The position numbers and the translations under genes are program-made. Positions 1-39,560 of a stretch of DNA of 64,000 nt are shown here, piece by piece (position 1 is the stretch's first letter; each line of letters begins with the position of its first letter). The stretch lies in assembly GCA_002269645.1 (NCBI GenBank), contig NIVC01000241.1, positions 33,187 through 97,186 on the forward strand, in the 5' to 3' direction. The notes under the pieces were generated by a model that was given only the letters and a program-made list of their open reading frames with translations, did no database searches and was not told the origin of the DNA. Source of the stretch: Macrostomum lignano. Taxonomy: Eukaryota.

Positions 1-39
1 TGATCCCCTCTTAGGTTGAATGCAGCTTTAGTCGGTTAG

Positions 40-633
40 TTCCTCATTTCATTCCAGATCCTCATTTCATTCCAGATCCTCATTTCATTCCAGATCCTCA
101 TTTCATTCCAGATCCTCATTTCATTCCAGATCCTCATTTCATTCCAGATCCTCATTTCATTCCAGATCCTCATTTCATTCCAGATCCTCATTTCATTCCA
201 GATCCCCATTTCATTCCAGATCCTCATTTCATTCCAGATCCTCATTTCATTCCAGATCCTCATTTCATTCCAGATCCTCATTTCATTCCAGATCCTCATT
301 TCATTCCAGATCCTCATTTCATTCCAGATCCTCATTTCATTCCAGATCCTCATTTCATTCCAGATCCCCATTTCATTCCAGATCCTCATTTCATTCCAGA
401 TCCTCATTTCATTCCAGATCCTCATTTCATTCCAGATCCTCATTTCATTCCAGATCCTCATTTCATTCCAGATCCTCATTTCATTCCAGATCCTCATTTC
501 ATTCCAGATCCTCATTTCATTCCAGATCCTCATTTCATTCCAGATCCTCATTTCATTCCAGATCCTCATTTCATTCCAGATCCCCATTTCATTCCAGATC
601 CTCATTTCATTCCAGATCCTCATTTCATTCCAG
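40..633. repeat. 18-bp minisatellite (GATCCTCATTTCATTCCA), ~33 copies
   Basis: Direct reading; produces the MRIWNE pseudo-ORF. Confidence 0.97.
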
Positions 634-1479
634 ATTTCAGATGGGTCCTCATTCCAGATGGGTCCTCATTCCAGATAGTTCTTCATTCTGCAGATTCTCA
701 TTCTGCAGTGACCTCTGCAGAAAAACCAAGGTGACAGCATGCAGGCATTTCTGAGCCCTTGATACAACAGTCCTCTGGCGAATTTTAGTGCTGGAGCTCT
801 AAATAAATGTAGCCGCTCACGGAATCGGACTCGAGTACTTGAGCACGAGTGTTGAGCACGCTGAGCACAAACTGCAGCACACACACCGAAGTTCGCTATG
901 GGGTTTGTTTAACTCTTAATTGTTAGACTATTCTTCCTCTCTCTGGTTTAATATCATTTCGGGGAAAATTACAGAGTTACCGCGCAGAAGGTAGGGAGGC
1001 AGGCCGACACCTGATCACGCACAGCAAACACAGGTGGCGACTCCGTTTGCTTCAAATCTGCGAGTTCCGGAGTAGGCTAGTACAGTGGGGAATCCGCCTA
1101 CTGCTCACAGGGATTGCCGGTGCGCCAGGGGAATCGAGCTGCGTCAGTTTCCATATTTTCTGTGCTCCCAGTAGGTCTCCGCAACTTTCCTGCTCGAGCT
1201 TCACGGAAAGACCAGCTGCAGTGATAATTGATGAGGCACCACCTTGGGGATTCCTTTCCTCGCCTCCGGAACCAGGGAGTCTCTCCTGCTGCTCATATAT
1301 TTCCCTTACATTGCACCTCTGAGAGACTGAGTGAGAGCGCTGGATGGAGAGATGAAGGGCCGGCAGAATTGCCAGACCCTCGATCTGCCTGCTTTTACTC
1401 ACTGAATAAGTACTTGTCGTTGTGCACTTTTATTTGGCTTAATCGTCCGCCTTGCTCAACTTCTAGCGTCATGCTCCTT

Positions 1480-2757
1480 GAGTCCTCATTCTAGTTGGGT
1501 CCTCATTACAGATGGATCCTCATTCCACATGGGTCCTCATTCCAGATGGGTCCTCATTCCAGATGGGTCCTCATTCCAGATGGGTCCTCATTCCAGATAG
1601 GTCCTCATTCCAGATGGGTCCTCATACCAGACGGGTCCTCATTCCAGATGAGTCCTCATTCCAGATGGGTCCTCATTCCATATGGGTCCTCATTCCAGAC
1701 GGGTCCTCATTCCAGATGGGTCCTCATTCCAGATGGGTCCTCATTCCAGATGGGTCCTTATTCCAGATGGGTCCTCATTCCAGACGGGTCCTCATTCCAG
1801 ATGGGTCCTCATTCCAGATGGGTCCTCATTCCAGATGAGTCCTCATTCCAGATGGGTCCTCATTCCAGATGGGTCCTCATTACAGATGGGTCCTCATTCC
1901 AGATGGGTCCTCATTCCAGATGGGTCCTCATTCCAGATGGGTCCTCATTCCAGATGGGTCCTCATTCCAGATGGGTCCTCATTCCAGATAGGTCCTCATT
2001 CCAGATGGGTCCTCATACCAGACGGGTCCTCATTCCAGATGGGTCCTCATTCCAGATGGGTCCTCATTCCATATGGGTCCTCATTCCAGACGGGTCCTCA
2101 TTCCAGATGGGTCCTCATTCCAGATGGGTCCTCATTCCAGATGGGTCCTCATTCCAGATGGGTCCTCATTCCAGACGGGTCCTCATTCCAGATGGGTCCT
2201 CATTCCAGATGGGTCCTCATTCCAGATGAGTCCTCATTCCAGATGGGTCCTCATTCCAGATGGGTCCTCATTCCAGATGGGTCCTCATTCCAGATGGGTC
2301 CTCATTCCAGATGGGTCCTCATTCTAGATGGGTCCTCATTCCAGATGGGTCCTCATTCTAGATGGGTCCTCATTCCAGATGGGTCCTCATTCCAGATGGG
2401 TCCTCATTCTAGATGGGTCCTCATTCCAGATAGGTCCTCATTCCAGATGGGTCCTCATTCCAGATGGGTCCTCATTCCAGATGGGTCCTCATTCCAGATG
2501 GGTCCTCATTCTAGATGGGTCCTCATTCTAGATGGATCCTCATTCTAGATGGGTCCTCATTCCAGATGGGTCCTCATTCTAGATGGGTCCTCATTCCAGA
2601 TGGGTCCTCATTCTAGATGGATCCTCATTCTAGATGGATCCTCATTCCAGATGGGTCCTCATTCCAGATGGGTCCTCATTCCAGATGGGTCCTCATTCCA
2701 GATGGGTCCTCATTCTAGATGGGTCCTCATTCTAGATGGATCCTCATTCTAGATGGG
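1480..2757. repeat. 17-bp minisatellite (GATGGGTCCTCATTCCA), ~75 copies; two more copies at 636-676
   Basis: Direct reading. Confidence 0.97.
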
Positions 2758-3631
2758 TTTATACTAATTTAAACCCCAGATTTCTAAGCAAAACTTCAAA
2801 ACTTCTTCCAAGATTTGATTAAACTCGCCCCAGAATGACCATTAAGGGAGCTCCACATTGCATAAATTTAATAGTTTCATTTTACAACCCCAGGACCAAA
2901 GCTCGGCCCTCTGTTCCACAGTCGTGAATTTTTATTTCCTTCTGCATCCCCTAGAAGAAGCTCGCTGCCCCATCGCCAGTTTTTCCACGCATGCTTGAAT
3001 TCGCGCGTGTTCGGCCATCGATAGCGCAGCTATTGCAGAATTTGTGCTGCTATGATGGGGAGCAGGAGGATGGGAATTTTTTCCACCGCCTTCTTCTTCT
3101 TCCCGTTTTTGCCGGAATCCCCTAAGCGCCGGTGCGGCACCGGCTTTCAGAAGCGGGTGAGTTGGGGGGGGCAGAGTCGAAAGGCGGCTCCCAGCCCATG
3201 CTGTGAGCTCAGTCAGGCAAAACAAAACACAAAAATCGGCAGCGGCCTCGCGGTCGCAGGATATCTTTCCCGCCCCGGCTCTCTCCTCTCTTCCCTGCCC
3301 CCGCTGCTCTTGGCTGGCCACTCATTCGCCCGTCCAGTGCTCAGCCAGGCTGCCCGCACGCTCCAATGCCGTTAAGCACTTGTGCAGCGGGCCAAAGAGT
3401 GACGAAGGCTTGAAAATGGGGCAAGCGGCTGAGTTTAAAAAAAAACTAACTTTCAGCCACCCTTATGCCAGACTCTTTCGCCGGAGGATGGGTTCCGTCG
3501 AGGCTTAAGTCTATAATCTCCGCTCCCGGGTCGCCGCCAGTCAACTCCAGTTGTTTTCTCTTTCCTGTTTTGCCCGGCCCCAAACCAGCTGGTTGATCTT
3601 TATTGAGAGAGAAAGTCGCCGCAACGCAACC

Positions 3632-3753
3632 ATGGCCCGTTTGCAAGTGCCTACTGTGCTAGTCAGCCAGCAGGACGAAGAGAGCTTCGGCGATCTGGGC
3701 GAACTGCGCAACTTTTCAGCCAGGCACCGGTGCCGCAGGCACACCCTGGCGAT
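3632..3753 (+). CDS. PDE4: Candidate PDE4 alternative first coding exon A (MARLQVPTVLVSQQDEESF...RHRCRRHTLA)
   Basis: ATG in ACCATGG context. Open frame ends at a phase-2 donor AT|GTGAGT (3754), which matches the phase-2 acceptor at 17996. Ends in RRHT, like the RRHSWI|C N-terminal exon of vertebrate PDE4D3. Confidence 0.7.
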
Positions 3754-3884
3754 GTGAGTGCGAGCCGCTTCGTTTAAAATGCTACGCATCAACATTTTTG
3801 GGAACGAGAGAAATCAGCGACAGTCGGGCCATAGACAAAACAATAGGAGGACAGAGCTGTGGAGGGTAGTAGCTCCAGTGAGAG

Positions 3885-4495
3885 ACGGGCCATAGACACA
3901 GCGATGGTAAGGGTAGTAGCGTCAGTGAGAGTCGGGCCATAGACACAGCGATGGTAAGGGTAGTAGCGTCAGTGAGAGACGGGCCATAGACACAGCGATG
4001 GTAAGGGTAGTAGCGTCAGTGAGAGACGGGCCATAGACACAGCGATGGTAAGGGTAGTAGCGTCAGTGAGAGACGGGCCATAGACACAGCGATGGTAAGG
4101 GTAGTAGCGTCAGTGAGAGACGGGCCATAGACACAGCGATGGTAAGGGTAGTAGCGTCAGTGAGAGACGGGCCATAGACACAGCGATGGTAAGGGTAGTA
4201 GCGTCAGTGAGAGACGGGCCATAGACACAGCGATGGTAAGGGTAGTAGCGTCAGTGAGAGACGGGCCATAGACACAGCGATGGTAAGGGTAGTAGCGTCA
4301 GTGAGAGACGGGCCATAGATACAGCGATGGTAAGGGTAGTAGCGTCAGTGAGAGACGGGCCATAGACGCAGCATGGTAAGGGTAGTAGCGTCAGTGAGAG
4401 ACGGGCCATAGACACAGCGATGGTAAGGGTAGTAGCGTCAGTGAGAGACGGGTCATAGACACAGCGATGGTAAGGGTAGTAGCGTCAGTGAGATA
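3885..4495. repeat. 47-bp minisatellite (GACGGGCCATAGACACAGCGATGGTAAGGGTAGTAGCGTCAGTGAGA), ~13 copies
   Basis: Period measured 3981->4028. Confidence 0.95.
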
Positions 4496-5084
4496 GTCTA
4501 TATGTAGCATTAGGTCAGAGAATGGGGCAGTAAAATTTATTGCTTTGTCACCCTACCTTTTGATTGCACTGGCTTTTCAGTTAAAAAAAGGTGAATCTCG
4601 CTGCTAGTTGTTAGCTCGTACATTACATCGCTGGATTAATTAAACTGTACGCAGTTTCCCAGCCATATCACCGAGCTAATTTCGCTAATTGTGTCATAAA
4701 ACTGTGGGTCCATCAGATGGAGGCAGTCATGTTATTTTCTGTCGCTAGTAATAGTACATATTTGGTGCTTCTTTTCAAGTGCTCACGGATCGCGTGCTAG
4801 GCTTCTTTCGCTACTCAAATTTTCTCCCCTCCGGGCGTCGCCGTCTCTGTGTTGCGGGCTTGACTGGATCAACACTTTCAAGCAGAAAATCTGATCGGAA
4901 AGGGAATCATGGAAGAGCTAAAAAATAAACTTCAGATTTCAATCGCGTGCCGGACTTGTTCTAGTTGGCTTCTCTGAGCCTTAAATAGGGGTGCCGTTTG
5001 TAAGCGGAACAACGCGTGCCGCAGGGCCTGTTTTGTACCTAAAATCTATTTTCTGCGACGCTAGCGCACAAACACTTCCCCCAC

Positions 5085-5965
5085 AGTTCTTGGGTTGGAC
5101 AACCCAGCGCATCAAACATTTCACTGACAGTCCTTGGATTGGACAACCCAGCGCATCAAACATTTCACTGACAGTCCTTGGATTGGACAACCCAGCGCAT
5201 CAAACATTTCACTGACAGTCCTTGGATTGGACAACCCAGCGCATCAAACATTTCACTGACAGTCCTTGGATTGGACAACCCAGCGCATCAAACATTTCAC
5301 TCACAGTCCTTGGATTGGACAACCCAGCGCATCAAACATTTCACTGACAGTCCTTGGATTGGACAACCCAGCGCATCAAACATTTCACTGACAGTCCTTG
5401 GATTGGACAACCCAGCGCATCAAACATTTCACTGACAGTCCTTGGATTGGACAACCCAGCGCATCAAACATTTCACTGACAGTCCTTGGATTGGACAACC
5501 CAGCGCATCAAACATTTCACTGACAGTCCTTGGATTGGACAACCCAGCGCATCAAACATTTCACTCACAGTCCTTGGATTGGACAACCCAGCGCATCAAA
5601 CACTTCACCTACGGTCCTTGGGTTGGATAACCCCAGCGCATCAAAAACAGTCCTTGGATTTGACAACACCAGCGCATCAAACACTTCACGCTCGGTCCTT
5701 TTGCTGGACAACACCAGCGCATCAAACACTTCACGCTCGGTCCTTTTGCTGGACAACACCAGCGCATCAAACACTTCTCCCACAGTCCTTGGATTGAACA
5801 AAACCAGCGCATCAAACACTTCTCCCACAGTCCTTGGATTTAACAACCCCAGCGCATCAAAAATTTCACTCACAGTCCTTGGATTTGACAACCCCAGCAC
5901 ATCAAACACTTCACGCACGGTCCTTTTGCTGGACAAAACCAGCGCATCAAACACTTCACCCACAG
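5085..5965. repeat. 44-bp minisatellite (ACAGTCCTTGGATTGGACAACCCAGCGCATCAAACATTTCACTG), homogeneous to ~5600, then diverged variants
   Basis: Direct reading. Confidence 0.95.
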
Positions 5966-6126
5966 TCCAAGGGCTTTAGCGTTGGATGCGTTAACGCTCA
6001 GCTACCTATCCCTAGTAACTAGCACTAAGGCTCTAGTAACGTCTTAACAAGAACACCAAGCTCAAATTCAATAGCTTGAACAAAATAATTTTGACATCAG
6101 TTCTACAGTTACAGCTTCTATGCTAC

Positions 6127-6197
6127 ATGGACTTCAGAGAAAGTAAATCAAAGTTCAGGGTCTTCGAGTATCACCCTGGGGTTGCCAGTCAATTGCT
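6127..6197 (+). CDS. Possible short PDE4 alternative first exon (MDFRESKSKFRVFEYHPGVASQL)
   Basis: ATG, 23 open codons and a phase-2 GTGAGT donor at 6198. No motif support, so it could be chance. Confidence 0.25.
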
Positions 6198-7072
6198 GTG
6201 AGTGAGCACTCATAGAATCTCTGAAGATAGATTCTAGTGCCGGTAGATGTGGCTGAAGCGGCAATGAGATTGAATACAGTGCCACGCACGCAAAGTGCAA
6301 TCAAGTCGCGCCAGAAAGGCGAATTCGATTTAGTCGGATGTTGATCTCTTCCCCGGCCAGGTCCCCTCCACGCTGGCACTGCAGAACGAGTGGGAACTGC
6401 GCCCAATCAACGGTAGTCTTGTTCGGTGCCGAGAGCACTTTAGATCCTCTTAGCGTGGAGAAAGAAGGTAGCTTTACTTCTTCCCAAGTTTCCCAGCTCC
6501 CTTTGAGAAACTGGTCAGTAAAGTGATATTTGCGACGTTTTTGCGTATTTGTAATCGAATCCGAATTCTTTCCTCAATTAAAAATGTCTTCTGGTTTTGA
6601 CCTCTCGCTGGTCTGTTTTTACAAAATCGTCGAATGTTAGCCGATAAATCAAACGTATTCAGGAATTGAATTTACAGGTCCGAGACTCGCAATCATTCTT
6701 TTACACGCCCTACTGCGCTCGCCGAATTACCATTGCGGCCCCTTCATCGGCGGTTTACTTATTGCCGCGTAGGCTCACCGTCCCCTCCAAATCAATCAAT
6801 GATTTCGCAGTGAACGATGCAGGTGGCCCCTGGACCTCGAGATGCGGCTACTGCAGTCTGAGAAGGTCGAGAAGAGAGAGGATGAGAGAGAATAGGAAGG
6901 TAGAAATAACGCTTTTGCCGAAACGATTTGCTGCTCCATTGTGACGTCGAATTTGGTCCAGGCAGCGAAGCGAGAGGGCGAATACGCGCCCGGATGAGGA
7001 TAAATTGGTCGGACAGACTCGGATTCTCCCACCGAGCAGAGGTGAGCAGAGTCTCAGCCGGATCAGGTGGTA

Positions 7073-7200
7073 ATGCAAGCCAGGAACAAGCGAGTTTCCG
7101 TGGACTGGTCGCAGGTGCCGCCGCACCGGGAGGCCCGAGGCAGCGGTGGCGGCAGCCGGCAGACGATGCTGGCCATGGTTGGTCGGAGGTCCCTGCCGCA
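7073..7200 (+). CDS. PDE4: Candidate PDE4 alternative first coding exon B (MQARNKRVSVDWSQVPPHRE...MVGRRSLP)
   Basis: ATG at 7073, GC-rich open frame, phase-2 donor CA|GTGAGT at 7201. Not in the ORF track because it is short. Confidence 0.55.
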
Positions 7201-7394
7201 GTGAGTTGCCTGGCAGGAGCTTCAGCTGAAGCAGTTTTCTTTGCTTTATTTAATATTTGCGCGGCTTTTTTTGTCCTTTGAGCCGTTCCTTTGACGTGTC
7301 ACGCACCTGCGCAGCGATTCGATTTTGTATCAGGACAGCTGACTTCCGTTTCCAGGAGCAGGAAGGCTGGCTCTGCGCTGGTAGTTTGGCCTAG

Positions 7395-8054
7395 TATTGG
7401 TTTTTGCATGCTAAGTGAGACATTTTTCAAGCAATCTGAGACTGAATAGCAAAAACACTATTGTCTATGGCCACCGCTCGCTGCAGCCCAGCTTTTTGGG
7501 CGCGCCTTGCAAGCAAAGTGAGACATTTTTTCAAGCTAAGTGAGAACCATATTGAAAACAAAGGGGTGGTTTTACGAAATTACAAAATGATGTATTGTCG
7601 GAAACTATATATTTAGAAAAGGATACGCAGGATACACAACAAAACAAGCGGTACAAAAATTGTTGATAATGTTATAAGCGTTCAAATAAAGGGTTGCATG
7701 TTGATACACTGAGCAAACTTTCGAGTGCAGTGGAGCTCCCAGCCTGCGATCTTGTGCGGAGTAATGACATGCAGCGATTCTCTTCCAAGCCGATCCATCA
7801 GCATGTATCGCCAATCATCTCGTGTCATGCCTATCCTCTCTATCCTCGTTGCTTGTTAGACGCAGTTGATTTGCCATAGCCCAGCCTTTGTTTTCAATAT
7901 GGTTCTCACTTAGCTTCAAAAAATTTCTCACTTTGCTTGCAAGGCGATCCCAAAAAGCTGGGCTGCAGCGAGGGGTGGCCATAGACAATAGTGTTTTTGC
8001 TATTCAGCCTCAGATTGCTTGAAAAATGTCTCACTTAGCATGCAAAAACCAATA
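7395..8054. mobile_element. Foldback/MITE-like element with ~170-bp inverted arms (7395-7564 and 7885-8054) and a 320-bp spacer
   Basis: The arms are near-perfect reverse complements and carry internal CTAAGTGAGACATTTTT sub-repeats. A TA target duplication is possible but ambiguous. Confidence 0.85.
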
Positions 8055-9462
8055 TTACTGCTTGTAAAAAACAAAAATCTTCTAGGCTTGGGCCTTAAGC
8101 AGACTCGTTTCTTTTTGCATTTTGCCACCCTAGTACTCATATACACCTACTTTGGAACTTTTTGATTCTTACTCTTCTCTCTAAGAGTACTACTCTCTAA
8201 AAGGCCTTTCCTACTAAGGCCTTTCTCAATGTCCCCTGAACACACATACGCAGGTGTACGTACACTTACACAGGTCCTGAATTTCTCTCAACGCAACTTT
8301 GTAGGTTAGTGAATTACAGGTGGGGAGAGTGGAAAGACTTCTGTTCGAACAAAAGTAAAGAGCGGAATATTCTTTACCTTTAAAATGCGCTCTAAACTAC
8401 TATCAGTACAAAGGCATGCTTCATGAGCCTCTTAACGCCTCAAACGTTAAGCTCATCGATTTTAGTGATTTAAAAAAATTAATTATCGCTTCCCAATTGG
8501 AATAATCACAATTAATATAATATTAATAACTTAAATAGATTTTGGTTCCGCGCCAATTCGGTACAGTTTTAGGGCACTGTTTATGGCCGCTTGAGAAACT
8601 TGGGGGGGGGGGCAGGTTTACAGGCGGTGGGGTCACGGGGCCGCTGAGTATCAAATGGGGGGGGGGCAGGAATACCGGCCGCAGCCAAAGGCCACTTCAG
8701 AACCTTTTTGAGCCTGGACGGGCCTCTGCTAACTGGGGCGCCGCCACCACACCTGCGCTGTCTCTCTATCACGCCCTGCCCCCCCACCCAAATATTTATT
8801 GTGCCGCATCGCGGGGTCCGCGGAGGTAAAATAAAGCAAATACACGTCCACTCACAATAGAGTAGCATAGCAGCACTTGACTCGCCTTGGTATTCGAGTT
8901 CGCCCACCCCCACCGCCTGAGCTGGCAACTCTGCTCCATTGTCGGGCGCGGGTCGTTTGAGTCCCGAGCGGGACGAGAAGCCGACAATAAATTCGAACGA
9001 TGGGGTGAGAAACACGGTGCAGCAGTCTGTTACAGTCGCCGCAGCAATGCCTGATGCCTTTCTCGCAGCTGGCCCGTGCTCGGAAATTCGCTGAGAAGAG
9101 GCGAGGGTACAAAAGACAGGGGAAGGAGAGAGGCAGCGGTGCGCTCAGTTGGACGGCTGAAAAAGCGACTGAGCGCAATGCCGAAGAGAAAGTAGACGAA
9201 CCAGAAACCAGAACTCATACTTGGTTTTCAGTGATATCGCAGCACCAGGCAGAAAATTTTTCATACTTTCCGCTTGTCCACTAGAAGCAGAAAGGCGTTG
9301 GACAAGAAAAAAACTTCCGAACTCCAGCTTGGACGTAGCAGAGGCTCGAAAGGCTCGCTCGGCTAAAAAGTGAATTTCAGCAACGGCCGAGGCGAGTCCC
9401 GTCGACAAGCGACGGAACGACGGGCGCAGAAGCAGCAGCAGCAGCAGGTGTCGCAGATTCCC

Positions 9463-9611
9463 ATGCTGCAACTGCCTGTTCTGCAGGAGCCGGTGGCGGA
9501 TGTGAACTGCCAGCGAGTCAGGTTTGACACGATGCCGTCCGGTGCCTACAGGCACAGCAGGCTTGGCGTGGGCCTGCAGCTGCTGTACAGGCGGCACTCT
9601 TGCAACACTTG
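9463..9611 (+). CDS. PDE4: Candidate PDE4 alternative first coding exon C (MLQLPVLQEPVADVNCQRVRFDT...LLYRRHSCNT)
   Basis: Phase-2 donor TG|GTGAGT at 9612. The splice gives RRHSCNT-C-FDENAG, parallel to vertebrate RRHSWI-C-FDVDNG. Confidence 0.75.
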
Positions 9612-10282
9612 GTGAGTCCGGATCGAAGGCCATTCAGGTTGGTGGTTGAGTTATAAGACTGTGAATATCCGCATAGCAGCTACACAGATCAGATCATTCT
9701 AAAGCACTTCACGAGCCTCCTATTTAAAATGTTTATTTAGTTCTTAGCTTAATTTGGCCATAGACAGAAAGCGAAAACGAATGACAAGTGAGAGTTAACT
9801 TTGTTAATCAATAAATTATTAGCCAAGCGCAAAGTTATACGAAAAACTCTAAACAGACGCCCAAATGGAAGTAGTAATTCCCCGTGAAATTTCAAAATAC
9901 GGCTTACAATAAAACGCCCAAGTTGTGGAAGGAAGAAAGTTTTGGAAAAAAAGTTCAATATAATATTTTTCAAGGATTTAGCCCACTCCATCAATAGGAT
10001 TAAGAAATTAACTACTTAAAGTAGTTGGCTCTACTTTAAAACATTTTTAATGACTTGTTGGCGCTGTGGATGGCTTAATTTGTCCCGAAAATCCTGGTTG
10101 CCTGATCTCGAATTTTGAGTTCCAATGATAGAAAAAGCGTCATGTAAAAATAAAAGAAGCGTCATGTCGAAATTAAGAGATTCATTTGGGAATCCCTACG
10201 TTGTTGTGGCTTGCAGGGAATCGCTATAATGGTGTAGTGCTATAATGACTCTTGGGGAGAATTACTGAAATGTTAATACTTT

Positions 10283-10325
10283 AGGGTTAGGGTTAGGGCT
10301 AGGGTTAGGCTAGGGTTAGGGTTAG
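10283..10325 (+). repeat. Short interstitial TTAGGG-like tract
   Basis: TTAGGG/CTAGGG units; a more degenerate tract lies at 59875-59920. Confidence 0.7.
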
Positions 10326-11353
10326 AAGGTTGACAGATTTTTTAAGATTTCAAGGCTTATGTGGGACATCGCTGAAATGTCAAGAGGGGAATTGTTGATA
10401 TGTTAAGGCTTGTGGGGGGAATTGCTGACATGTCAAGGCTTACAAGGGACTGCTTACAAAGTATATTTCAAAGAGACGCTACATGTAGTTTATTAGAAAA
10501 CTTGTACTGCATTTTGGCTCCCCAACGGGGGGGGGCGCTGATTGCTAGTATGAGTTATAATTTTTAAATGAATTTTTTCATGAATAATTTGGTAAGAGCG
10601 AACACATAAGGCTGAACATACAAAATGGAACAAAAATTTTTGCAGAAAAGCATCGAAATTACTTTTATAAGAGACCCCAATCCAAATTTAAAAGCTTTAG
10701 TTAAGTAACATAGAACGTGAACAGTAAACTTGATCAACTATTTTTCCCTACAAAACTTTGCATAGGGAAATTCCATAGGGAAACTCCACTTTCTCAGTGC
10801 ACCTTCTCTTAGCCAAAACAATAAAATCAATGTGACTTACGGCCCTCTTGTTCGACTATGCAACGTTTTCTTAGCGATGTTCTCAACACCCATTGTGTGC
10901 ATTCATGATCCCCCAGCCCCTAAAAACTTCCCACTCCACTAGTGGACAACTCACACTTTCCGTTTCGTCTCTCTCTTTCACCTCACCCAGCTCCTTCGTT
11001 CTCCCCGTTTTCCTCCTTCGCCCACTTCGCTGTCAGGCTGCAGGTCGGGATTTGGACTCGCCGCGTCATCCACCGCGTCATCTGGCTGGGCCGAAGCCCC
11101 CTCGATCGGAAGCAACGCACAAGTCAACCTTGCTGCCTCTAGACTTGCTCGCGTTTCTCCTTGCGCCCTACTAAGCTGCCCGGGGACAAGCCCGCGCTTG
11201 CCATGGAGGGAAGAGAACGGGAGAAGGGGGGCAGCAGTGGAGCTCAAGGAGGGGTGGGGAGAGTCGCATGCCTATATAGTTTGACAGCGGAGACGGAGAT
11301 TGTGTGAGAAGTATAGGATTTGCTCAATACAAACTGATTCCACCTAAGCAGTT

Positions 11354-11529
11354 ATGCAAGCAGCGACTGGCAATCCGCAGCAGCAGCAGCAGCAGCAGCT
11401 CCCAGTGCGGCTCCGCCAGCCCGCAGCTGCGATGTACTTGCACTCGCGGAGCGTGTCTGCGCCGAATGCCGCTCCAGGCGCAGGCGGCTGCCGCAGCGTT
11501 CGATTCTCTGCGCTGAGCACCCTGGCCAG
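11354..11529 (+). CDS. PDE4: Candidate PDE4 alternative first coding exon D (MQAATGNPQQQQQQQLPVRL...RSVRFSALSTLA)
   Basis: GC-rich polyQ-containing ORF with a phase-2 donor AG|GTCTGT at 11530 (weaker donor consensus). Confidence 0.5.
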
Positions 11530-11584
11530 GTCTGTCCGCTGGGTCAGCTGTCCTCTGGGGGGAAGGGGGGGGTCACAGTGCCGA

Positions 11585-11920
11585 AACTACACAAACCTTA
11601 AACTACGCAAACTTTAAATTTCACAAACCCTACATTTCACAGACCTTAAACTTCACAAACCCTAAACTTCACAGACTCTAAACTTCACAAACCCTAAACT
11701 TCACAGACTCTAAACTTTACAGACTCTAAACTTCACAGACTCTAAACTTCACAGACTCTAAACTTCACAGACTCTAAACTTTACAGACTCTAAACTACAC
11801 AAACCCTAAACTTTACAAACCCAAAACTTGACGGACCCTAAACTTCACGGACCCTAAACTTCACGAACCCTAAACTTCAGACTCTACACTAAACAAACCC
11901 TAAACTTCACAAACTCTAAA
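11585..11920. repeat. 16-bp minisatellite (AGACTCTAAACTTCAC), ~20 degenerate copies
   Basis: Period measured 11705/11721/11737/11753. Confidence 0.9.
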
Positions 11921-12721
11921 ATCCGATTAGAATTTACTTTCGGATTGCACAAATACTTCAAATCTTTCAACAAAACTGTTTGATAGTCAAAATTTCGAGT
12001 GATAACTGAAAGAAATCATTTTCAATCAACTCGAGCAGGTATAAATTGCCTACATATCCTTATCAACCCACCGAACAAAATACTAATTTTTATTAAGTCG
12101 AGTTTAATTCAGTTTAATCAAGACAATCTATCAAACAGGATGGGCTGCTATTCAAAGTGAGATTGAACTCGTGTTGATTCCGCAGGAGCCTCCTCAATAA
12201 TTTCCGTTTATTTCGCGAAGGCTATTTTTTCTGCTTCTGGCTGAGCTTCCGTGAATAAAAGTGAGCCGAGACCCCGGAGAGGCAGTTAGTGGGATCTGGG
12301 AGCGCTGGGCGCAGGGGAAAGGGAGAATTGGAGAGAGCGAGTGACGCACTTCGGCGGCAGATGTCACGGCAGCGATGTCAATCCAATTGCAAAAGCAGAC
12401 CGAGCCCAGACCCAGCTGCCTCCCCACTTTCGCCGCCGAGAAGGAGCACCGTCTTCCTGTCGCTCTCAGTCAGTCTATTTCCTTCTCCAGCCTCTCCCTG
12501 GCGTAACTCAATCCTCAGCCGGCCCAATTAAGTATCCACAGGGGTGGAAAGAGAGGCCCGTGGGAGACGGCAGAGAACTCATCCGATGCCCCGACGCTGC
12601 TTATAAAAAAAGCAACGTGAGAAAAAAGAAGAGGCAATTCAAGCGGCAGGTTGAAGGCGCAACAGAAATTTGGCCTATAGGCTTTAGCTAATAATAACTA
12701 TATTAGTGATAAGAGAGCCGA

Positions 12722-12927
12722 ATGGAATTCGGACGTCGTCGAGAATTAAGGCGTCTGGCAACAGCCGGCTCAGCAGCTGCCGCAACCGCCGCCGCCGCCT
12801 CAGGTGGCTCGGGTAGGTGGACCCAGCGGCGGCACTCGCTGATGTGGACCAACAGTACAGCGCACGCCGCTAGAAGGCACTTCATTCACGCCCGGCTGGT
12901 GCAGAGAGTCTGGGAGCGAACTACCAG
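12722..12927 (+). CDS. PDE4: Candidate PDE4 alternative first coding exon E (MEFGRRRELRRLATAG...QRRHSLMW...VWERTT)
   Basis: ATG-led ORF with an RRHS motif and a phase-2 donor AG|GTAGCT at 12928, immediately before the in-frame stop. Confidence 0.55.
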
Positions 12928-13511
12928 GTAGCTGCAAGCTAAGCTGAGGAAGCTGACCAAGCCCAGCCCGAGTGCAGCCAGTGAAATGCTGGAAATTCAG
13001 ATTTGCATCTCGCTACGCACTGTTGTCACTTCGAGCCTTGGGGCTTTTGGGCGAATAGATGCTCGGACTGATAGATAGAGGAGCTGTAGAGATGCGGGCG
13101 AGAGACTGGGGGTGAGACGGAATGAGCCGCGCCAGTCCACTAAATTGGCTCGGGGCTCCGGGTCTCGCGTCAGTCCATTCTCTGGACTCCCCTCCGCTCT
13201 CGTTAGCAACCCAGCTTGGGGGAACCAGTGCCGAATGGGGCCTCGGGCTTCTGTCGGGTGCGTGCGCAGCAGGGGGGAAGCTAATGCCTAGAGACTGGCG
13301 CGAAGATTTTAGATATAGCGGCTCTGACAGACCCACTATGCGCACTACTTGCTCCAGTCCAGTGCGGTGTTTTCAGCTCCCGCGAAATAGCTTTACTATG
13401 GATTGGGAAATAAGCTCTGGACATCCCACCAGCAGAAAAATTTCCCCATTCGTCAAAGAGGATCCTCTAGTAGACGTTTGGAAACCGTCATTTTATATGA
13501 TATGAAGCTTC

Positions 13512-13932
13512 AGAGCAAACCAACTCACAATGCATGAGCAATCCAACTCACAATGCCTGAGCAATCCAACTCACAATGCATGAGCAATCCAACTCACAAT
13601 GCATGAGCAATCCAACTCACAATGCCTGAGCACTCCAACTCACAATGCCTGAGCAATCCAACTCACAATGCCTGAGCACTCCAACTCACAATGCCTGAGC
13701 AATCCAACTCACAATGCCTGAGCACTCCAACTCACAATGCATGAGCAATCCAACTCACAATGCCTGAGCACTCCAACTCACAATGCCTGAGCAATCCAAC
13801 TCACAATGCCTGAGCACTCCAACTCACAATGCCTGAGCAATCCAACTCACAATGCCTGAGCACTCCAACTCACAATGCCTGAGCAATCCAACTCACAATG
13901 CCTGAGCAATCCAACTCACAATGCATGAGCAA
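13512..13932. repeat. 23-bp minisatellite (GAGCAATCCAACTCACAATGCCT), ~18 copies
   Basis: Direct reading. Confidence 0.95.
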
Positions 13933-15009
13933 GTTAAGAAATTATTTTCTAAGAAAATAACTTAATAAGCTTCAGCAGTAGCTAATTCATCGAACAACGC
14001 GACTTCATTAATAATTAGTTAAATTTCTACATTTCCCCAGTTTATTGGCAGCAGTCAAAGGGACAGTATTTGACCCAAGTCTCAGGTAATCAATTATCGT
14101 TTCAACACCGATCCAAGTTGTTCCCAAAGTCCCTGTCCAACTCCCTGGTGAATTTTGCTCACACTCCGATGACCGAATTCCCTTCGTCATGATCTGCGGA
14201 TCTACGACATTTTCATCCTGTATTCTAGGAATTCATGCGACCTAATTTCTTCGCTTCAATGATGCACGCGCGACCGGACTGGGTCGAGGGTAGGGGGGGG
14301 GGGGAGACACAGGGTTCCCACCTCTTCTGCTACCGGCTGGCAGGGCGGCAGTTCCGCATTAATTCTCTTTGGGTCTCTGCCTGCCCACCGCCCACCGCCC
14401 AGACCCAGCGGCTCATCTTCCCTCGGGGAGGGGGCAACAAAACTGAGGCAAGCTTTAACTAAGGACGACATCCAGAGATGTTGAAGCCGGATCGCAGCTT
14501 CCTGTTTATAAACCAGTGCCGATCCCGCCTGAGCCAATGAGCCCCCCGGGAGTCTCAACTTTGCGCAAAGCAAATTTTAAATCGAATCTCTGTGAACTCC
14601 CGCAGCAGCCGGCTGTTTCTCCATCTCCACTTTCATTTTCTTTCCCCCCATCTCTCTCGTCGCATCCGCCCTCTCCTCTTCCCTCCCCGCCTCCCGAATC
14701 CCCGATCCCGGCCTCTCTTTCACGCGGGCCAGCAGTAGAGGGATGAGATTCCGGAGGACCCGCGGGGCGCCGGCCCACTGGGCTTCGCGTCAGCGAGCGT
14801 GTCCGGGATGTGCCAACGGCTCGGCCGGCTGTTGGCGGGGAACTATACAAGGCCTTATCCATAATGGCTCTAGCTAAACAGAGGGCCGCCACTGCCAGCT
14901 TAGCCTCGCCTGTCCCGCCATCTCTGCTTTCTGTCTCAATTCTGCGTGTCTTAAAGAGACAAAAACAGCTGCTTTGCAAGCAAGAAAGCAAAGCAAACCG
15001 CAGCCGACC

Positions 15010-15308
15010 ATGCAGAGCCTCTTGGCCAGCCTTCCGGAGCACCCGGACGAGTCGCAGCAGCCAGCACTGGAGGAGTGGACGGAGACTGAGGAGCTGCCGC
15101 CGCAGGAGGAGATCCAGTACGAGACTTCGGTGATCCCAACGCCGAATGGGGACATCACCGTCACTAAGAAGATCTTGAAGCGGCGCCGGGTCCGCATAAT
15201 CAAGAACATGCAGCAGGGCTTCGTGCCCGCCTCAGCTGCGCCGTCACCTGTTGGCTCCGTGCTCACAAGCAGCACCGTGAAAGTCACTCGGACCCGCCAG
15301 ATGCTCGG
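15010..15308 (+). CDS. PDE4: Candidate PDE4 alternative first coding exon F (MQSLLASLPEHPDESQQ...KKILKRRRVRIIK...RTRQML)
   Basis: ACCATGC start and strongly GC3-biased codons. Phase-2 donor GG|GTGCGC at 15309, directly before the 14-bp array. Confidence 0.65.
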
Positions 15309-15327
15309 GTGCGCGACTGGGACTCAG

Positions 15328-15945
15328 GACCTTAGATCTGGGACCTTGGATCTGGGACCTTGGATCTGGGACCTTGGATCTGGAACCTTGGATCTGGGAC
15401 CTTGGATCTGGGACCTTGGATCTGGGACCTTGGATCTGGGACCTTGGATCTGGGACCTTGGATCTGGGACCTTGGATCTGGGACCTTGGATCTGGGACCT
15501 TGGATCTGGGACCTTGGATCTGGGACCTTGGATCTGGGACCTTGGATCTGGGACCTTGGATCTGGGACCTTGGATCTGGGACCTTGGATCTGGGACCTTG
15601 GATCTGGGACCTTGGATCTGGGACCTTGGATCTGGGACCTTGGATCTGGGACCTTGGATCTGGGACCTTGGATCTGGGACCTTGGATCTGGGACCTTGGA
15701 TCTGGGACCTTGGATCTGGGACCTTGGATCTGGGACCTTGGATCTGGGACCTTGGATCTGGGACCTTGGATCTGGGACCTTGGATCTGGGACCTTGGATC
15801 TGGGACCTTGGATCTGGGACCTTGGATCTGGGACCTTGGATCTGGGACCTCTGATTTGGGACATTGAGTCTGGAACCTTGGTTTCTGGACCTTCGATTTG
15901 GGACCTTGGTTGTGCGACCTTGGATCCTGGACCTTCAACTTATTC
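15328..15945. repeat. 14-bp minisatellite (GGATCTGGGACCTT), ~37 perfect copies plus a degenerate tail
   Basis: Direct reading. Confidence 0.97.
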
Positions 15946-17204
15946 TGTTTGACTGCTCCATAATTGAATCTTTTACCCGAATATTTTGCTTTGCATCCGG
16001 GATATCGAATATAGGAGCCTGGATCTAGGGATTTTCGAACTAGAACTTTAGATTTCAGGGGCTCGGAACAAAAATTCGGATTCGGTATTGTAGATATTAG
16101 TGGCTAACTGGATGTAGGATAATATCAGTCTGTCTAAATCGCTTCTAGTTTCAAGACTTCTTCAGCTGCTCGCCCAGTTGCACTAATATTGCATAAAAAC
16201 ACAATGCGGTAAAGAAGAGAGTTTCATCCCTTTCCAACTCCATCCCCTTCTTTCTCTTCCACTTTCCTACTCTATCTATCTTTTCGCTGCCCAGTTCCTC
16301 CCGGCAGAGTGACATTCGTTGTGTTACGGGGAAACCAGTGAACAGCTTCGCGCACTCTCCATCACTTTTCCTTCGGCTCGGGCTTCGTGACCGCCTGCTG
16401 TGCCGCCACCTGTTGGTTTTGCAATGGTTTGCCTATGCGCAGGCATCCAGTCGGTCGAATAAGCGAATTCCGACCGTACTTTAAGGCCGAACACGTGCAG
16501 CCAGGCCGGCCGGCGAAGGGCCCCCTTCCCAGACACGCAACACCGGAAAGACAATGCCCAATGCCTCTTCTTGCTTATTTCTCCTGCCATTGTATGATGC
16601 GGCGCCTTTTCAAGGTCGCTAGTAGAAGTTCCTCGGGAATGAAGGAGCGAGAGTTCGTTAGCAAAGCGCTTCTTAGTGTGTAGTGATTCCTATCTGTCCA
16701 GGATTCGAGCACTGGGTACCGAATCGAAAGCCCTTGAAAGTAGGCAAAAATAAGCTTTTGCGTACAAAAAGATGAAGGCAATAGACAATAACATAGGATT
16801 GCGCTAGGGACAAGTGCTGTCGCTCTTTTAAAGCCATTTCTGCCTATTTTCAATACGCTCATATTCAATTATCAAATTAATATACAATTTACCTGCCTCG
16901 CCCCCCCGTCCTTCGCTCTGTACTGTAACCGCTATCGATCGCCCCAACCCCCTTCTTGACTCACCAATGCTAGAAACCCCTTTCCTTTCTACCCCCATTC
17001 GCCATCTCTAAATATGAGTATATATGCGACAAGCTGTTAAAACCCATGGACTTCAAATCCGGTGAATTCCAATCCCCGGGACTATTTTTTTCATACACTC
17101 TTAAATCAGAAGTCATTCTCAAACAAAGACTTGATAAATAGTTGGAATATAGGTAAACAAAATTGGAGTATATGTGTGTTAAAGTAAGATTTGATGCCTT
17201 TAAA

Positions 17205-17480
17205 AACTTTTCTCCTCTCTTCTCTTTCCTCTCTCCTTTCTTTTCTCTCCTCTCTACTCTCTTCTCTCGCATCTCTACTCTCTTATCTCTCCTCTCCCCT
17301 CTCTTCTCTCTCATCTCTACTCTCTTTCTCTACTCTCTTATCTCTCTTCTCAACTCTCTCGTCTCTTCTCTCTACTCTCTTATCTCTCCTCTACTCTCTT
17401 ATCTCTCCTCTCTACTCTCTTATCACTCCTCTCTGCTCTCTCCTCTCTGCTCTCTCCTCTCTCCTCTCTACTCTCTACGT
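17205..17480. repeat. CT-rich low-complexity repeat
   Basis: Recurrent CTCTCCTCTCTACTCT-type units. Confidence 0.8.
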
Positions 17481-17995
17481 ATCTACCCTCTACATGTAAG
17501 ACTGCCAAACTGGAGTCAATTAAATTCATAAGCTGCTTGGCACACCTGTCACACTTTAATCTCTTATATTGAATCGGCTCCCAATGATCGAGGAGGTTTG
17601 TTTTGCAGTTCATCCCGGCTGATGAACAGTCCTCAGCTGCTGATAGACTGTTGACAAGCCCGAATCCCGCTGCTGATTGCGGCAATGCAGTCAGTTCCTT
17701 CATTTCGATTCAGCACTTGCCTGCCGGCCTATTTGCATAATCGAATAAACCTCATTTCCTGGCCGAATTCTGAATAATAATATTCAACACGGCATTCTAA
17801 TTGGGCTAAGGAAGCACAATAATAGTCAGAGATAATTCCGGTGCACTTTCCGTTGCTGGGTTAATGAAAGCTACTTTGAATTCAAAGAAAACTTCCGATC
17901 AAGATTGACCGGATTGGGTCAACTCAGGTCGGGTCAAATGAGGTCAAGCACCGGTACTCACTCCCACTCGCCATCTCTAACGATTCCTACTTCAG

Positions 17996-33548
<15,553 letters not shown>

Positions 33549-35990: not shown

Positions 35991-36964
35991 GCTGTTGCGT
36001 CGAACAGAATATCCTCACACAGACATACTCAAACCTCATAAAAAGCATTTTCTTGTCTTTTCCATTTTCATTGCTTATCATGTTTTGACACTTATATATT
36101 TCTATTATCCAGTATTAACGGCTGTCGATTGAAGAAATTCAGTAGTAGAAAAAGAGGTCACTATACCATGCACCTACAAAAAACCTAGCACGCTACGCTA
36201 CTGGTGTCAGACAGCAGTTGATGTAAGCATCATAGAGGTATAGCTGGATTGCTGAATAGTTTGACAGTTTAATTGTGACAGCCAATCAAAGATCCTGTAT
36301 TAGGGGTTGTCGCACGTAAGAGTAATCAGTAAAAGTCAGTAAGAGCCAATGGTTCTTTTATTTGTTGGTGAGTCGAAAGAGTTCTTTATGAAAATGTTTG
36401 TGAGTTATGAGCGTTTTTTATAGAATATTTTAATTCATAATAAATGCAAGGATGACTTTTAAAAGTAGTCTACCTAAGTCATCCTTGAATTATAAACACG
36501 TTGCCCATGGAAAATTAAATACAGTCTAATTAGATGAAGTCGTTTACCGTAAATATTAAATATACGAGTAGTTAATTTTAATTCAATTAATTTTCTAGAA
36601 AATCTTAATCGTATGACTTAAAATAGAATTATTGAAAATTCGAAGCTTCAATGCTTGTTGTGTAGTGTAGTGTTCTTGTTTTGTGTTTTTATGATTGATT
36701 TCGTATAGACTCAAAGCATAGGAGTTTTATAGCTGCTAATATTTTGGCAGTGTGTTGCCGATCAAATGTACAAGTCCCTTTCATATATAACTTGTGACAC
36801 TTGTCATTTTATCAGCAACTGCTTCCTTGAATTTTCCTAAATTTTCTGTGAATATTTTCTTTTCCTCTCATTCTTGTGCTCTAATTTTTACGTGTACAAT
36901 CACTGTTTATGTTCGGACTTTACGATAATTACGCAGACTTAGTCCCCCTTAGAGTAAACCAAAC

Positions 36965-37649
36965 GGCATTCTTTCGTCTTACGATGCCTGCTATGCATTT
37001 CAATGGGATGGCCCCCATTCGTTTTATGATGCCCATATAAAGCATATGGCATAGGCGTGATGGTGTAGTTTCTGTATAATTTTCGTTTTATGGCAATACA
37101 CGTATTTTGTATTTCATATACTTGACGGATTGTTGTTCATTAATGAAAGTCCAGCGCTATATATTCCGTTTCGTTTTATGATGCCGCAAGTGTTAGAATT
37201 ATTCATTGGGGATCGTAAGACAAAAGTGAGGGGGGGGTACTTTGGGTCCTTAAATTTGTTTACTGCTTCTTCAGCCATGGCTACGAAGTGCCCACTAGGA
37301 TCGTTCTTATAATCGCCCACCAGGCCTATAATATCCATTTTGTTTCGCGATGCCCCAGACGTGACGTTGTAGTTATTCATAAGGCATTGTAAAATGAAAC
37401 AGATTATAATGGCTCAATAGCTTCAGTTGCTAATAAGGGCGGACACAATGTTAAAGCGTGTAAGTTGTGACATTTCCGTGGAAATATAGTCAGAAGTACA
37501 AACCAACTGTGTGACTCAATTTAAGACCTCTGAAACACTGCACTCTTCCATCGTAAAGTATACATTTTTAAGGCCTTCTTGCTTATTTAACATGGGCATC
37601 GTAAGATGAAACATATACAATTTTGGGCATCGTAAGACGAAATAATGCC
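36965..37649. mobile_element. 685-bp MITE with 24-bp TIRs (GGCATTCTTTCGTCTTACGATGCC) and a 3-bp AAC target site duplication
   Basis: TIRs match at 23/24; AAC flanks both ends; several subterminal TTCGTYTTAYGATGCC repeats. Confidence 0.85.
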
Positions 37650-39129
37650 AACTATATACAATGTCTAGGGCAGATGATTAGGCCTAGACTATAGAATCTA
37701 GAATATCTAGAATCTAGATACATATATTTTTCATAGAAATGACTTCTGATAGGCTTTTTATAGAATGCTATTTTTTGTAGAAATGGCATTTTAGAAAACT
37801 GACACTTAAAAATAGGTGCTTTTATATATTTAAATAAGTTCTAGCATAAAAAGTTATTATTAAATGCAAAGCTGATAGTGATAGGCCTATAATAATCTAT
37901 TTTTAAAGCAATCAATTCCTAACAGATTTTTTGTTTTAGAACTTATAATTTGATGAAATTTTCATTGTTTTTAGGCCTACTTTTACAAAAGCAGAGGTTA
38001 GCTTTTTTGTTGTTTCTAATCAAATCAAGGAACATTTTTTATATACTAAGTTGTTGATTATTTACTAAGAGGAAAAAGAAATAAAAGGCTCTGTCTCTAA
38101 TTGTAGGTCTAGCAAAGCAAAGGTAGAAAAAGTTTATTTATAGCCCTCTATGTATTTTAGAACTAAGATTAACTTTTTTAGGCATAGTTGCCAAAAGAAA
38201 TCTTGGCTATTCTAGCTATATTAGGCCTTGCCTAGATTTTTATTGATAGATAAAAGAAAAAATCTAAAAATAGGCCTAATATATTTATCATTTGATATAA
38301 AATTGAGGGTTATATTGAATTTGTCAATATCTAATTTGTCAACAACAAAAATTAAAAGAAATCAAAATCACAAGTTAAGTGAATTTGTCAACAACAAGAC
38401 AGACTCATTATAAAGTTTATTCCTTAGTGCAATAACTGTAGTATAAATTTCTATAGTTCAATGAGCCAAATATTACCAAAAACTTTTATAGGACTTCATA
38501 AGTGCATATTCTAAATGCTATTATGTATATACAACTCAAAATCTAACAAATTGGGCAATCAATGCTACATACATAATATTACATTCTATATAGTTGAGTA
38601 TCTTGATGAAGTATATTAAGAGCTAGTCTATTGGGTGTTTTATATACTATGTATGCTTTATTACACTATTGCATCTTTAGAATAAATCAGTTCACTTTAA
38701 TTCAAATTTATCCTAGGTTTATTTTTCTCCTTAATTATTAATAGAGACTTTTTTAAGTACAACTTCAAATTTCAAAATGAGTACAAAAATAGTTCTGGGG
38801 ATTTATTGCAATTTAGCAAGTTTAAAATCTAAAGATTTAATAGGCTGTAAAAATGTATAGGCCCCTATCAAATAAAACATTTGCCTTTGTTATCTTATAT
38901 GTATCTTCTCAATAGGCTTTTATCTTTATCTTTTAATTTTTCACTTATATTAAATATATACTAGCTAGTCAATAGCATATCATCAGGTAACCAAATTTGT
39001 AAACAATGCATTGTAAGATAAACTGAATTTATCAACATAGTTCAATAGAGTTGACAAATTAAATGTTGACAAATTTGGTGGCACCCAAAATTGAAAGCAA
39101 GAGAACAAATGAGAATAAGATAGTCAAAA

Positions 39130-39560
39130 TGTCAGATAAACAGCATAAAATTTTATATAGGCAATAGTACTTTTCAAATGTTCTAATTTTCTGCTTGTTT
39201 CCACTTTAGTTTTTTTTACAATAGGCCTAGCATTCTTTTAGTTCCTCTCCTTCCCAATTAGGTAATTTTCAATTCAAATTCTAGCATATAATGAGTCTGC
39301 TTTATGTAAGTGCTATAGGTTTCTAAAAAAGCTGTTTATCATTTTTGTATTGAAATTTTGGTAGAAACTTGTTTTTCCTTTCTAATTCTTCTTATTGGAA
39401 TTATTGGCAATATGCTTAATAAGATTCTAAGTCTATTTTTCATAAGGTTTTGAAGTGATATATTGTTGTCCCTTTCTTTGCAAAGTCCAAAAATGACCAA
39501 GTTGTTCCTTTTATCTTTTTTGTTTTATTTCTTTAACAATCTCATTGTAGTTAGGCCCTA
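39130..39560 (-). pseudogene. Decayed LINE ORF1-like fragment inside the CpG-free block
   Basis: Minus strand reads VKEIKQ/KDKRNNLVIFGL and LIGK...RPIV. These resemble the E.ER.RK.NL.IFGL.E and R(L/I)GK...RPI motifs of CR1/L2-type ORF1; many stops. Confidence 0.4.

Follow-up and report, generated by a model that had tools for sequence, protein, structure and literature searches.

Evidence for alternative 5' coding exons upstream of the UCR1 acceptor in a PDE4 gene of Macrostomum lignano

PDE4 start exons in other animals and the M. lignano locus

The 5' exons of mammalian and fly PDE4 genes have their own promoters, and they direct the localisation and regulation of the enzyme. In mammalian PDE4D, unique AUG-bearing 5' exons are joined to a shared exon, which starts (C)FD(V/E)(D/E)N(G/A) and includes the RRESF site of UCR1. 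The exon specific to PDE4D3 ends RRHSWI/C (here and below, a slash within a sequence marks an exon boundary). The Drosophila dunce gene has several promoters and gives rise to at least eight transcripts with five N-terminal classes (bioRxiv 10.64898/2025.11.29.691281). Here we analyzed a PDE4 gene of Macrostomum lignano that appears to share the arrangement of PDE4D. The window, by which we mean the whole stretch of DNA analyzed, comprises the last 64 kb of contig NIVC01000241.1 (positions 33187-97186, assembly GCA_002269645.1) and contains one copy of the gene, Mlig000524g4, on the + strand.

Among 222 PDE4 proteins of other phyla, several N-terminal classes recurred directly ahead of FDVENG. 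The PDE4D3 type, RRRHSWIC, was present in insects, Lingula, Octopus, scallops, Biomphalaria, and nemerteans. Another class, MQ.E.G.I.DL......RRHTLANVR, was found in Drosophila, Lingula, Octopus, Haliotis, scallops, Tubulanus, Lineus, and Biomphalaria. Further classes included a short form, STSALR.PKQR.SFW.RH, which is joined at exon E2 of the common body. The PDE4 loci of Lingula anatina, Lineus longissimus, Tubulanus polymorphus, Haliotis, and Octopus have 9-16 RefSeq isoforms that differ before FDVENG (16 annotated N-terminal isoforms in Lingula, 15 in Lineus, and 13 in Tubulanus), and the RRHSWIC, RRHTLANVR, SWPV, and short STSALR...SFW.RH classes are all represented among these five loci.

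A tblastn search with the PDE4D3 sequence located a complete PDE4 body at 17985-33473 (+), with exons of 41-73% identity. When the assembled body was used in a protein search, M. lignano proteins ranked at the top, led by PAA87228.1 (BOX15_Mlig000524g4; hereafter P0001), followed by thousands of metazoan PDE4s. The contig encoding P0001 matches the window at 100% identity over 31.7 kb, which identifies the window as part of NIVC01000241.1. Precomputed assignments place the PDEase_I catalytic domain (PF00233) and the PDE4_UCR region (PF18100) in P0001. Its cluster has four members, two of which are encoded by sister copies of the gene: PAA71009.1 (P0121, Mlig000524g1) and PAA60738.1 (P0122, Mlig000524g2). 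An earlier note on this DNA had described a single-gene locus, a description that does not fit the three near-identical annotated copies that we saw (g1, g2, and g4) or the other M. lignano PDE4 paralogue clusters, which number at least three (P0003, P0004, and P0006). Vertebrates carry four PDE4 genes; the M. lignano complement is a paralogue set of its own plus recent copies.

The common acceptor exon, E1, starts as ttcag/C TTC GAT GAG, and two upstream bases are needed to read xFDENAG, the start of UCR1. Its translation, FDENAG..., provides this UCR1 start together with the RRESF(L)YRSDSD site. E1 is identical in all three M. lignano copies, and the DNA flanking it differs. All 8 known donors of the gene are of the form GT[AG]AG.

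Taken together, the evidence described below makes it probable that the region from 3.6 to 18 kb is the 5' region of Mlig000524g4 and that it contains several mutually exclusive 5' coding exons, at least three of them real (3632-3753, 9463-9611, and 15010-15308), which feed the acceptor at 17996. The features on which this reading is built are as follows.

17996..18160, + strand: common acceptor exon E1, first half of UCR1; enters in phase 2; donor GTAAGT; identified by translation and tblastn
9463..9611, + strand: alternative first coding exon, PDE4D3-like; MLQLPVLQEP...LLYRRHSCNT plus TG, donor GTGAGT, phase 2
3632..3753, + strand: predicted alternative first coding exon, class B (the RRHTLANVR class); MARLQVPTVLVSQQDEESFGDLGELRNFSARHRCRRHTLA plus AT, donor GTGAGT, phase 2
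15010..15308, + strand: conserved coding exon, predicted 5' exon; MQSLLASLPEHPDES...EELPPQEEIQYETSVIPTPNGDITVTKKILKRRRVRIIKNMQQ...RQML plus GG, donor CGG/GTGCGC, phase 2
21846..22360, + strand: internal alternative first exon for a short-type isoform; continues past the E2 acceptor (22243/22244) into E2

In the architecture that we propose, each 5' exon would supply its own AUG and a short N-terminal peptide and would end two bases into a codon at its donor. These donors would be spliced to the single acceptor at 17996, opening the common UCR1-UCR2-catalytic body. A fourth start, internal at 21846, would yield a form without the first half of UCR1, and 7073-7200 and 11354-11529 are possibly further members. 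The same enzyme would thereby receive differing targeting or regulatory N-termini. In two of the exons (3632 and 9463), a basic RRH[S/T] motif of the kinase type would sit right at the end, in the manner of PDE4D3. If the PDE4 genes of mammals and of flies (dunce) are a guide, a promoter of its own or a spliced-leader acceptor should precede each 5' exon, and the separate promoters and the peptide functions are both proposed by that analogy. The M. lignano 5' exons seen here span about 14.4 kb (3632 to 17996), unlike those of dunce, a far larger locus.

We also considered trans-splicing directly onto 17996. If the flatworm spliced leader ends in AUG, that AUG would be out of frame with the body, and in its frame the exon reads LR followed by a stop. 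Trans-splicing at this position would therefore give no functional start, and this option was rejected. Spliced-leader trans-splicing is not known from flies. It does occur in M. lignano, where 38.8% of genes are trans-spliced (PMC5730564). For some of the 5' exons, a spliced-leader acceptor could stand in place of a promoter.

Upstream exons at 9463, 3632, and 15010

The exon at 9463-9611 is annotated in the sister copies. PAA71009.1 and PAA60738.1 begin with the exact 9463 peptide, which maps with 100% identity to 9463-9609, and continue from 17997 onward; joined to 17996, the exon reads ...RRHSCNTC FDENAG. The GenBank annotation of the assembly was built from a genome-guided RNA-seq assembly (StringTie/TACO/TBONE) (PMC5730564). 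Since the sister-copy models are thus derived from RNA-seq, the 9611-17996 junction has transcript support, though in near-identical copies. Among the six candidate first exons considered in this work, 9463 alone had a transcript-level junction to the common exon, through these models. By the match of these protein models to the DNA, we regard 9463-9611 as confirmed as an alternative start spliced to 17996.

The 9463 exon shares the MLQ.P start, the RRHS motif, and the terminal split Cys with the PDE4D3-type class. The position of the split codon in RRHSCNT/C is as in PDE4D3; the M. lignano exon is longer, with about 33 additional residues separating its MLQ.P start from RRHS. A paralogue that is 70% identical, Mlig017825, keeps RVRF...RRHSCHTC plus TG/GTGAGT in phase 2, located 2.2 kb upstream of its own UCR1 exon, the acceptor of which reads ccgcag/C TTC GAG GAG AAT.

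The upstream exons could be relics in the window, that is, long-form 5' exons that are silent in the g4 copy and expressed from the sister copies only. GenBank gives only the 21846 start for g4, and it is g1 and g2 that receive the 9463 start. Moreover, the sequenced M. lignano line has duplicated chromosomes, and blocks of at least 95% identity add up to 180 Mb in it (PMC5730564). However, the exons, donors, and acceptor of g4 are all intact and 99-100% identical to those of the sister copies (a candidate at 6127, discussed below, aside). Reads from near-identical copies are not reliably assignable, and the difference between the g4 model and those of g1 and g2 is therefore probably the product of an annotation filter and not biology. 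We consider silent relics an unlikely explanation.

The exon at 3632-3753 is supported by homology. A profile hidden Markov model (HMM) of 13 bilaterian RRHTLANVR exons, run against 2965 six-frame fragments of the window, matched the open reading frame (ORF) at 3509-3754 with an E value of 3.3e-5 and 21 bits; the next best E value was 0.66. The alignment pairs sGdisdLkayhsrrlrnRRHTLA of the profile with FGDLGELRNFS-ARHRCRRHTLA of the window, and the same match was obtained in both sister copies, where the exon is intact with 1 synonymous change. In phmmer searches, the 3632 ORF matched 14 class-B N-termini. The exon ends at the junction typical of the class (RRHTLANVR/FDVENG), in the right phase and at a GTGAGT; joined to the C of 17996, it reads ...RRHTLAI FDENAG. 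The Drosophila dunce N-terminus MQAEQGSIGDLQKYHSRYLKNRRHTLANVR/FDVENG belongs to the same class. These results support 3632-3753 as a probable member of a conserved bilaterian N-terminal exon class, and we infer a splice from 3753 to 17996. Both this exon and the 9463 exon are more diverged than their counterparts in the five loci named above, having RRHTLAI where those loci have RRHTLANVR and RRHSCNTC where they have RRHSWIC.

GTGAGT occurs 15 times on the + strand and 35 times on the - strand of the whole window. An RRH[ST] motif lies no more than 12 residues upstream of just two of these sites, 3753 and 9611, both in phase 2. The occurrence of RRH[ST] directly before GTGAGT at these two positions is clearly non-random.

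For the exon at 15010-15308, the evidence came from another organism. We scanned 1.84 billion representatives by HMMER with the 99-residue ORF. The sole match was P0223 (E=2e-7, 54% identity over residues 25-72), which, with its cluster mate P0224, originates from Logan assemblies of DDBJ runs DRR639055 and DRR639838. The two Logan contigs examined are L006 (9.4 kb, 1-9407, GC 35%), which has no DNA similarity to the window, and L007 (1-1757). In L006, the homologous ORF ends VPA, encoded as CCG GCA GG/GTAAGG, a strong phase-2 donor followed by an immediate stop. The same strand carries a UCR1 exon 3.1 kb further downstream, which has the acceptor cag/C TTTGACGTTGAGAATGG (cag/C TTT GAC GTT GAG AAT GG) and reads FDVENGG. 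This UCR1 exon shows about the same similarity (64-71%) to insect-like sequences as to those of nemerteans and M. lignano. The M. lignano exon also ends in GG/, 2.7 kb upstream of 17996. With a C at the acceptor in both species, the same split Gly codon, GG/C, therefore precedes FD in each.

L006 and L007 are 93% identical, and 9 of the 10 differences between them within the exon fall at codon position 3 (p ~4e-4 under equal use of positions). Across the M. lignano copies, all three of them, the exon is invariant over its 299 bp, a result equalled by only 1% of local windows of the same size. The only in-phase GT with a usable score in the M. lignano exon is that at 15308, and we infer that it is spliced to 17996, giving ...MLG FDENAG. 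The comparison across species supports coding constraint on 15010-15308 and a conserved position and phase relative to the UCR1 exon. The exon carries a KRRRVR basic cluster, which might be read as resembling a nuclear localisation signal.

An ORF under coding constraint could also be a small gene in its own right, nested within the first intron, or a cassette exon inside the transcript that is reached from an exon further upstream. In line with this, no transcript shows the junctions of the 15010 ORF, the M. lignano donor (GTGCGC) is atypical, and the ORF stays open for 185 further codons, into a 14-bp tandem array. In addition, no annotated PDE4 isoform of other phyla, including those of the five loci named above, has an N-terminus like that of the 15010 exon. 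However, the conservation in L006 stops exactly at the strong AGG/GTAAGG phase-2 donor, with the stop directly after it, and the next in-phase exon of L006 is UCR1. The GG/C glycine codon is split alike in both species, no separate gene is called at 15010 in any M. lignano copy, and the copy number of the 14-bp array varies between copies. We judge a nested gene or a cassette exon to have a low probability and favor a 5' exon of the PDE4 gene.

Chance level and the remaining candidates

The earlier note had listed six ATG-led exons, at 3632, 7073, 9463, 11354, 12722, and 15010, each ending before a GT (after 3753, 7200, 9611, 11529, 12927, and 15308). These coordinates proved right, as did the phase, since every exon length leaves the 2 extra bases that 17996 needs. 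The three RRH[S/T] motifs are also present as described: RRHT ends the first exon, RRHS ends the third, and RRHS occurs in the middle of the fifth. The three candidates not yet introduced are listed here.

7073..7200, + strand: possible alternative first exon; MQARNKRVSVDWSQVPPHREARGSGGGSRQTMLAMVGRRSLP plus CA, donor GTGAGT, phase 2
11354..11529, + strand: possible alternative first exon; MQAATGNPQQQQQQQLPVRLRQPAAAMYLHSRSVSAPNAAPGAGGCRSVRFSALSTLA plus AG, donor CAG/GTCTGT
12722..12927, + strand: doubtful candidate, Arg/Ala-rich ORF with internal RRHS; donor CAG/GTAGCT

All six candidates combine an AUG of their own with an open frame and a donor phase that fits the acceptor, which is a weak criterion. 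ATG-led ORFs of at least 90 nucleotides ending at a GT numbered 94, 84, and 83 in phases 0, 1, and 2 on the + strand and 68, 85, and 74 on the - strand. Restricted to donor scores of at least 4, the counts were 5, 5, and 9 on the + strand versus 3, 7, and 6 on the - strand.

An alternative is an explanation by chance, in which only the annotated starts at 9463 and 21846 are used and the remaining five candidates arose fortuitously as ORFs in GC-rich DNA, intronic or upstream, and were singled out by the selection on phase. Several observations speak for it or, more broadly, weigh against the set of exons that we propose. The combination of an ATG and a phase-2 GT is not above chance (83 sites on the + strand and 74 on the - strand), and separate evidence was therefore required for each exon. 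The 3632, 7073, 11354, 12722, and 15010 peptides were found in no transcript or protein of the searched collections, and none of the four members of the P0001 cluster begins with any of them. The donors at 3753, 7200, and 9611 are GTGAGT; those at 11529 (GTCTGT), 12927 (GTAGCT), and 15308 (GTGCGC) are weak and deviate from the GT[AG]AG of the known donors. The paralogue locus Mlig017825 has no counterpart of 7073, 11354, 12722, or 15010. Even the 9463 exon was not significant, nor among the top matches, with a profile of ten invertebrate PDE4D3-type exons (M..L.VP...RRRHSWIC before FDVENG). Lastly, divergence among the three M. lignano copies is low and patchy, and the verified 9463 exon is not distinguishable by it.

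This last point was examined with a window-matched control. The copy comparison gave one synonymous change each in 7073, 9463, and 11354, as in 3632, and one non-synonymous change in 12722. Between 30 and 66% of local windows were equally conserved among the three copies, and only 15010 and E1 stood out. Copy-to-copy conservation, uninformative for the other exons, was therefore not used as evidence for them.

The candidates were also compared by codon log-odds; 1172 codons from the two paralogues served as the training set, and each score was normalised to the base composition of the sequence itself. The scores were compared with those of 50 GC-rich null ORFs, the 95% point of which was -0.04.

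15010: 0.31, above all null ORFs and highest of all
3632 and 9463: 0.08 each, top 2% of the null ORFs
11354: 0.00, top 2%; other frames close
7073: -0.10, top 10%; the frame of the ORF is the best of six
12722: -0.31, with 34% of the null ORFs as high; all six frames alike

The chance explanation does not accommodate 3632, which matches a conserved exon class (E=3e-5) and ends at the right place and phase. Nor does it fit 15010, which has a homologue upstream of the UCR1 exon of another organism, in the same phase and with differences nearly all at third positions (9/10). As an account of all five candidates, chance appears improbable to us. Taken candidate by candidate, it is likely to apply to 12722 and may apply to 7073 and 11354 as well.

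Searches of other phyla, the paralogue locus, and L006 yielded no homologue of 7073, 11354, or 12722. We put the chance that 7073-7200 is a real first exon at about even, because its GTGAGT donor is perfect. That of 11354-11529 is somewhat below even, because its donor is GTCTGT; the start of its peptide, MYLHSRSVSAP, resembles MYARSVSAP of Lineus isoform X7 (only E=0.28) and molluscan MY.HRSLS, a lead only. The 12722-12927 ORF is unlikely to be a real first exon; one RRH[ST] motif such as it contains is expected by chance in 18 kb. The earlier note had also named a possible exon at 6127, which we rejected: its frame is shifted by an 8-bp indel in both sister copies. Both 12722-12927 and 6127 are most likely chance ORFs. 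The count of "at least six" exons was not supported: three exons are backed by independent evidence, 12722 shows no coding signal, and 7073 and 11354 are possible members only. A further phase-2 ATG-ORF at 6338-6513 (donor CTG/GTCAGT) showed zero differences among the three copies. The surrounding 800 bp (~5800-6600) is equally invariant relative to L002, Pfam gave nothing in the ORF, and it is probably not an exon.

Other searches of the window returned little. Two protein word-index searches with the candidate peptides gave no match; they covered representatives only, so that the sister-copy 9463 proteins inside the P0001 cluster were missed, and words from poly-Q and poly-A runs probably dominated the first query. 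Pairwise phmmer comparison of 116 foreign N-termini with all ORF fragments was too noisy, and class profiles did better. Profiles of the SWPV, YKKFKK, HLKI, and RRRTTGS classes had no match in the window, and apparent PDE4D3-type matches near 16.9 kb were spurious. Pfam had no match in any candidate exon or in a long minus-strand ORF at 14509-15231.

Internal start, surroundings, and meaning of the locus

The annotated protein P0001 begins at the 21846 ATG, without the 17996 exon, and the paralogues begin likewise. At its end, the 21846 exon resembles STSALR.PKQR.SFW.RH..DLIVTPF, the short-form class present in molluscs, brachiopods, and nemerteans. The exon opens with a Cys cluster, has an RRGS site of its own further on, and in its Cys-rich opening parallels the Drosophila dunce start MVCSFCCCCYNF. 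The Cys cluster might act as a palmitoylation-type membrane anchor, to judge from its appearance. A protein of an older annotation, UniProt A0A1I8GYB6 (P0123, no initial Met), maps to 19905-20048 and then from 21764 onward in another frame (21764-21937). This mapping suggests a possible non-coding 5' exon of the short-type transcript within the E1-E2 intron.

Within the body, a frame-keeping 39-nucleotide micro-exon at 25850-25888, between E2 and the UCR2 exons, is included in the annotated proteins. The next gene downstream, from about 41903 onward (+), belongs to the Dpy19 family (PF10034, 708-residue product), and L003 likewise has this gene downstream of its PDE4 copy. An AT-rich block (36000-41000), with a GC content of 26-35%, separates the PDE4 stop from the Dpy19 gene; the rest of the window is about 50% GC. 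Long tandem arrays occupy 41-635, 1482-2758, 3863-4493, 5063-5968, 11573-11920, 13513-13932, 15327-15935, 17211-17476, and 18287-18993, with periods of 18, 17, 47, 44, 16, 23, 14, 21, and 32 bp, in that order. Their copy numbers vary among the three gene copies, and several of them start 19-127 bp past a donor (3753, 11529, 15308, and 18160).

The proposal of the earlier note that alternative ATG-bearing 5' exons feed the UCR1 acceptor at 17996 was supported, by the sister-copy models for 9463, by homology for 3632, and by the coding signature for 15010. It was also correct that annotation misses such exons, as the GenBank model of the g4 copy starts at the internal 21846. What we could not sustain is that this locus encodes its isoforms independently: the 3632 class is common to insects, molluscs, brachiopods, and nemerteans, and the PDE4D3-like 9463 exon is kept in a 70%-identical paralogue. 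Judged by these exon classes, the multi-start layout is the ordinary, ancient PDE4 design, its exons inherited and not newly evolved. What is new here are unannotated exons of a known architecture, with the 15010 type as a candidate additional conserved class.

A broader reading can be offered tentatively, and we hold it with less than even confidence. The 15010-type exon would be an undescribed PDE4 N-terminal module (an acidic stretch followed by VIPT..G.ITVT...KRRR(R)VR(I/V)(I/M)KN) common to M. lignano and a distant animal, and the locus would retain at least four ancient start classes, counting the RRHTLA, RRHS, and short types with it. The multi-promoter design, including the exon-end RRH[S/T], would be ancestral to bilaterians, and 7073 and 11354 would be lineage specific.

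In practical terms, the GenBank model of g4 gives a short-type PDE4 only, and knock-downs, reporters, and promoter constructs based on it would leave out the long isoforms with a full UCR1 regulatory module. The 15010-type exon is a candidate new class for a role in localisation. The recurrence of two N-terminal classes across phyla, with the same splice phase and an exon-end RRH[S/T], suggests that isoform-specific targeting and phosphorylation of PDE4 are ancient and not a speciality of vertebrates or flies.

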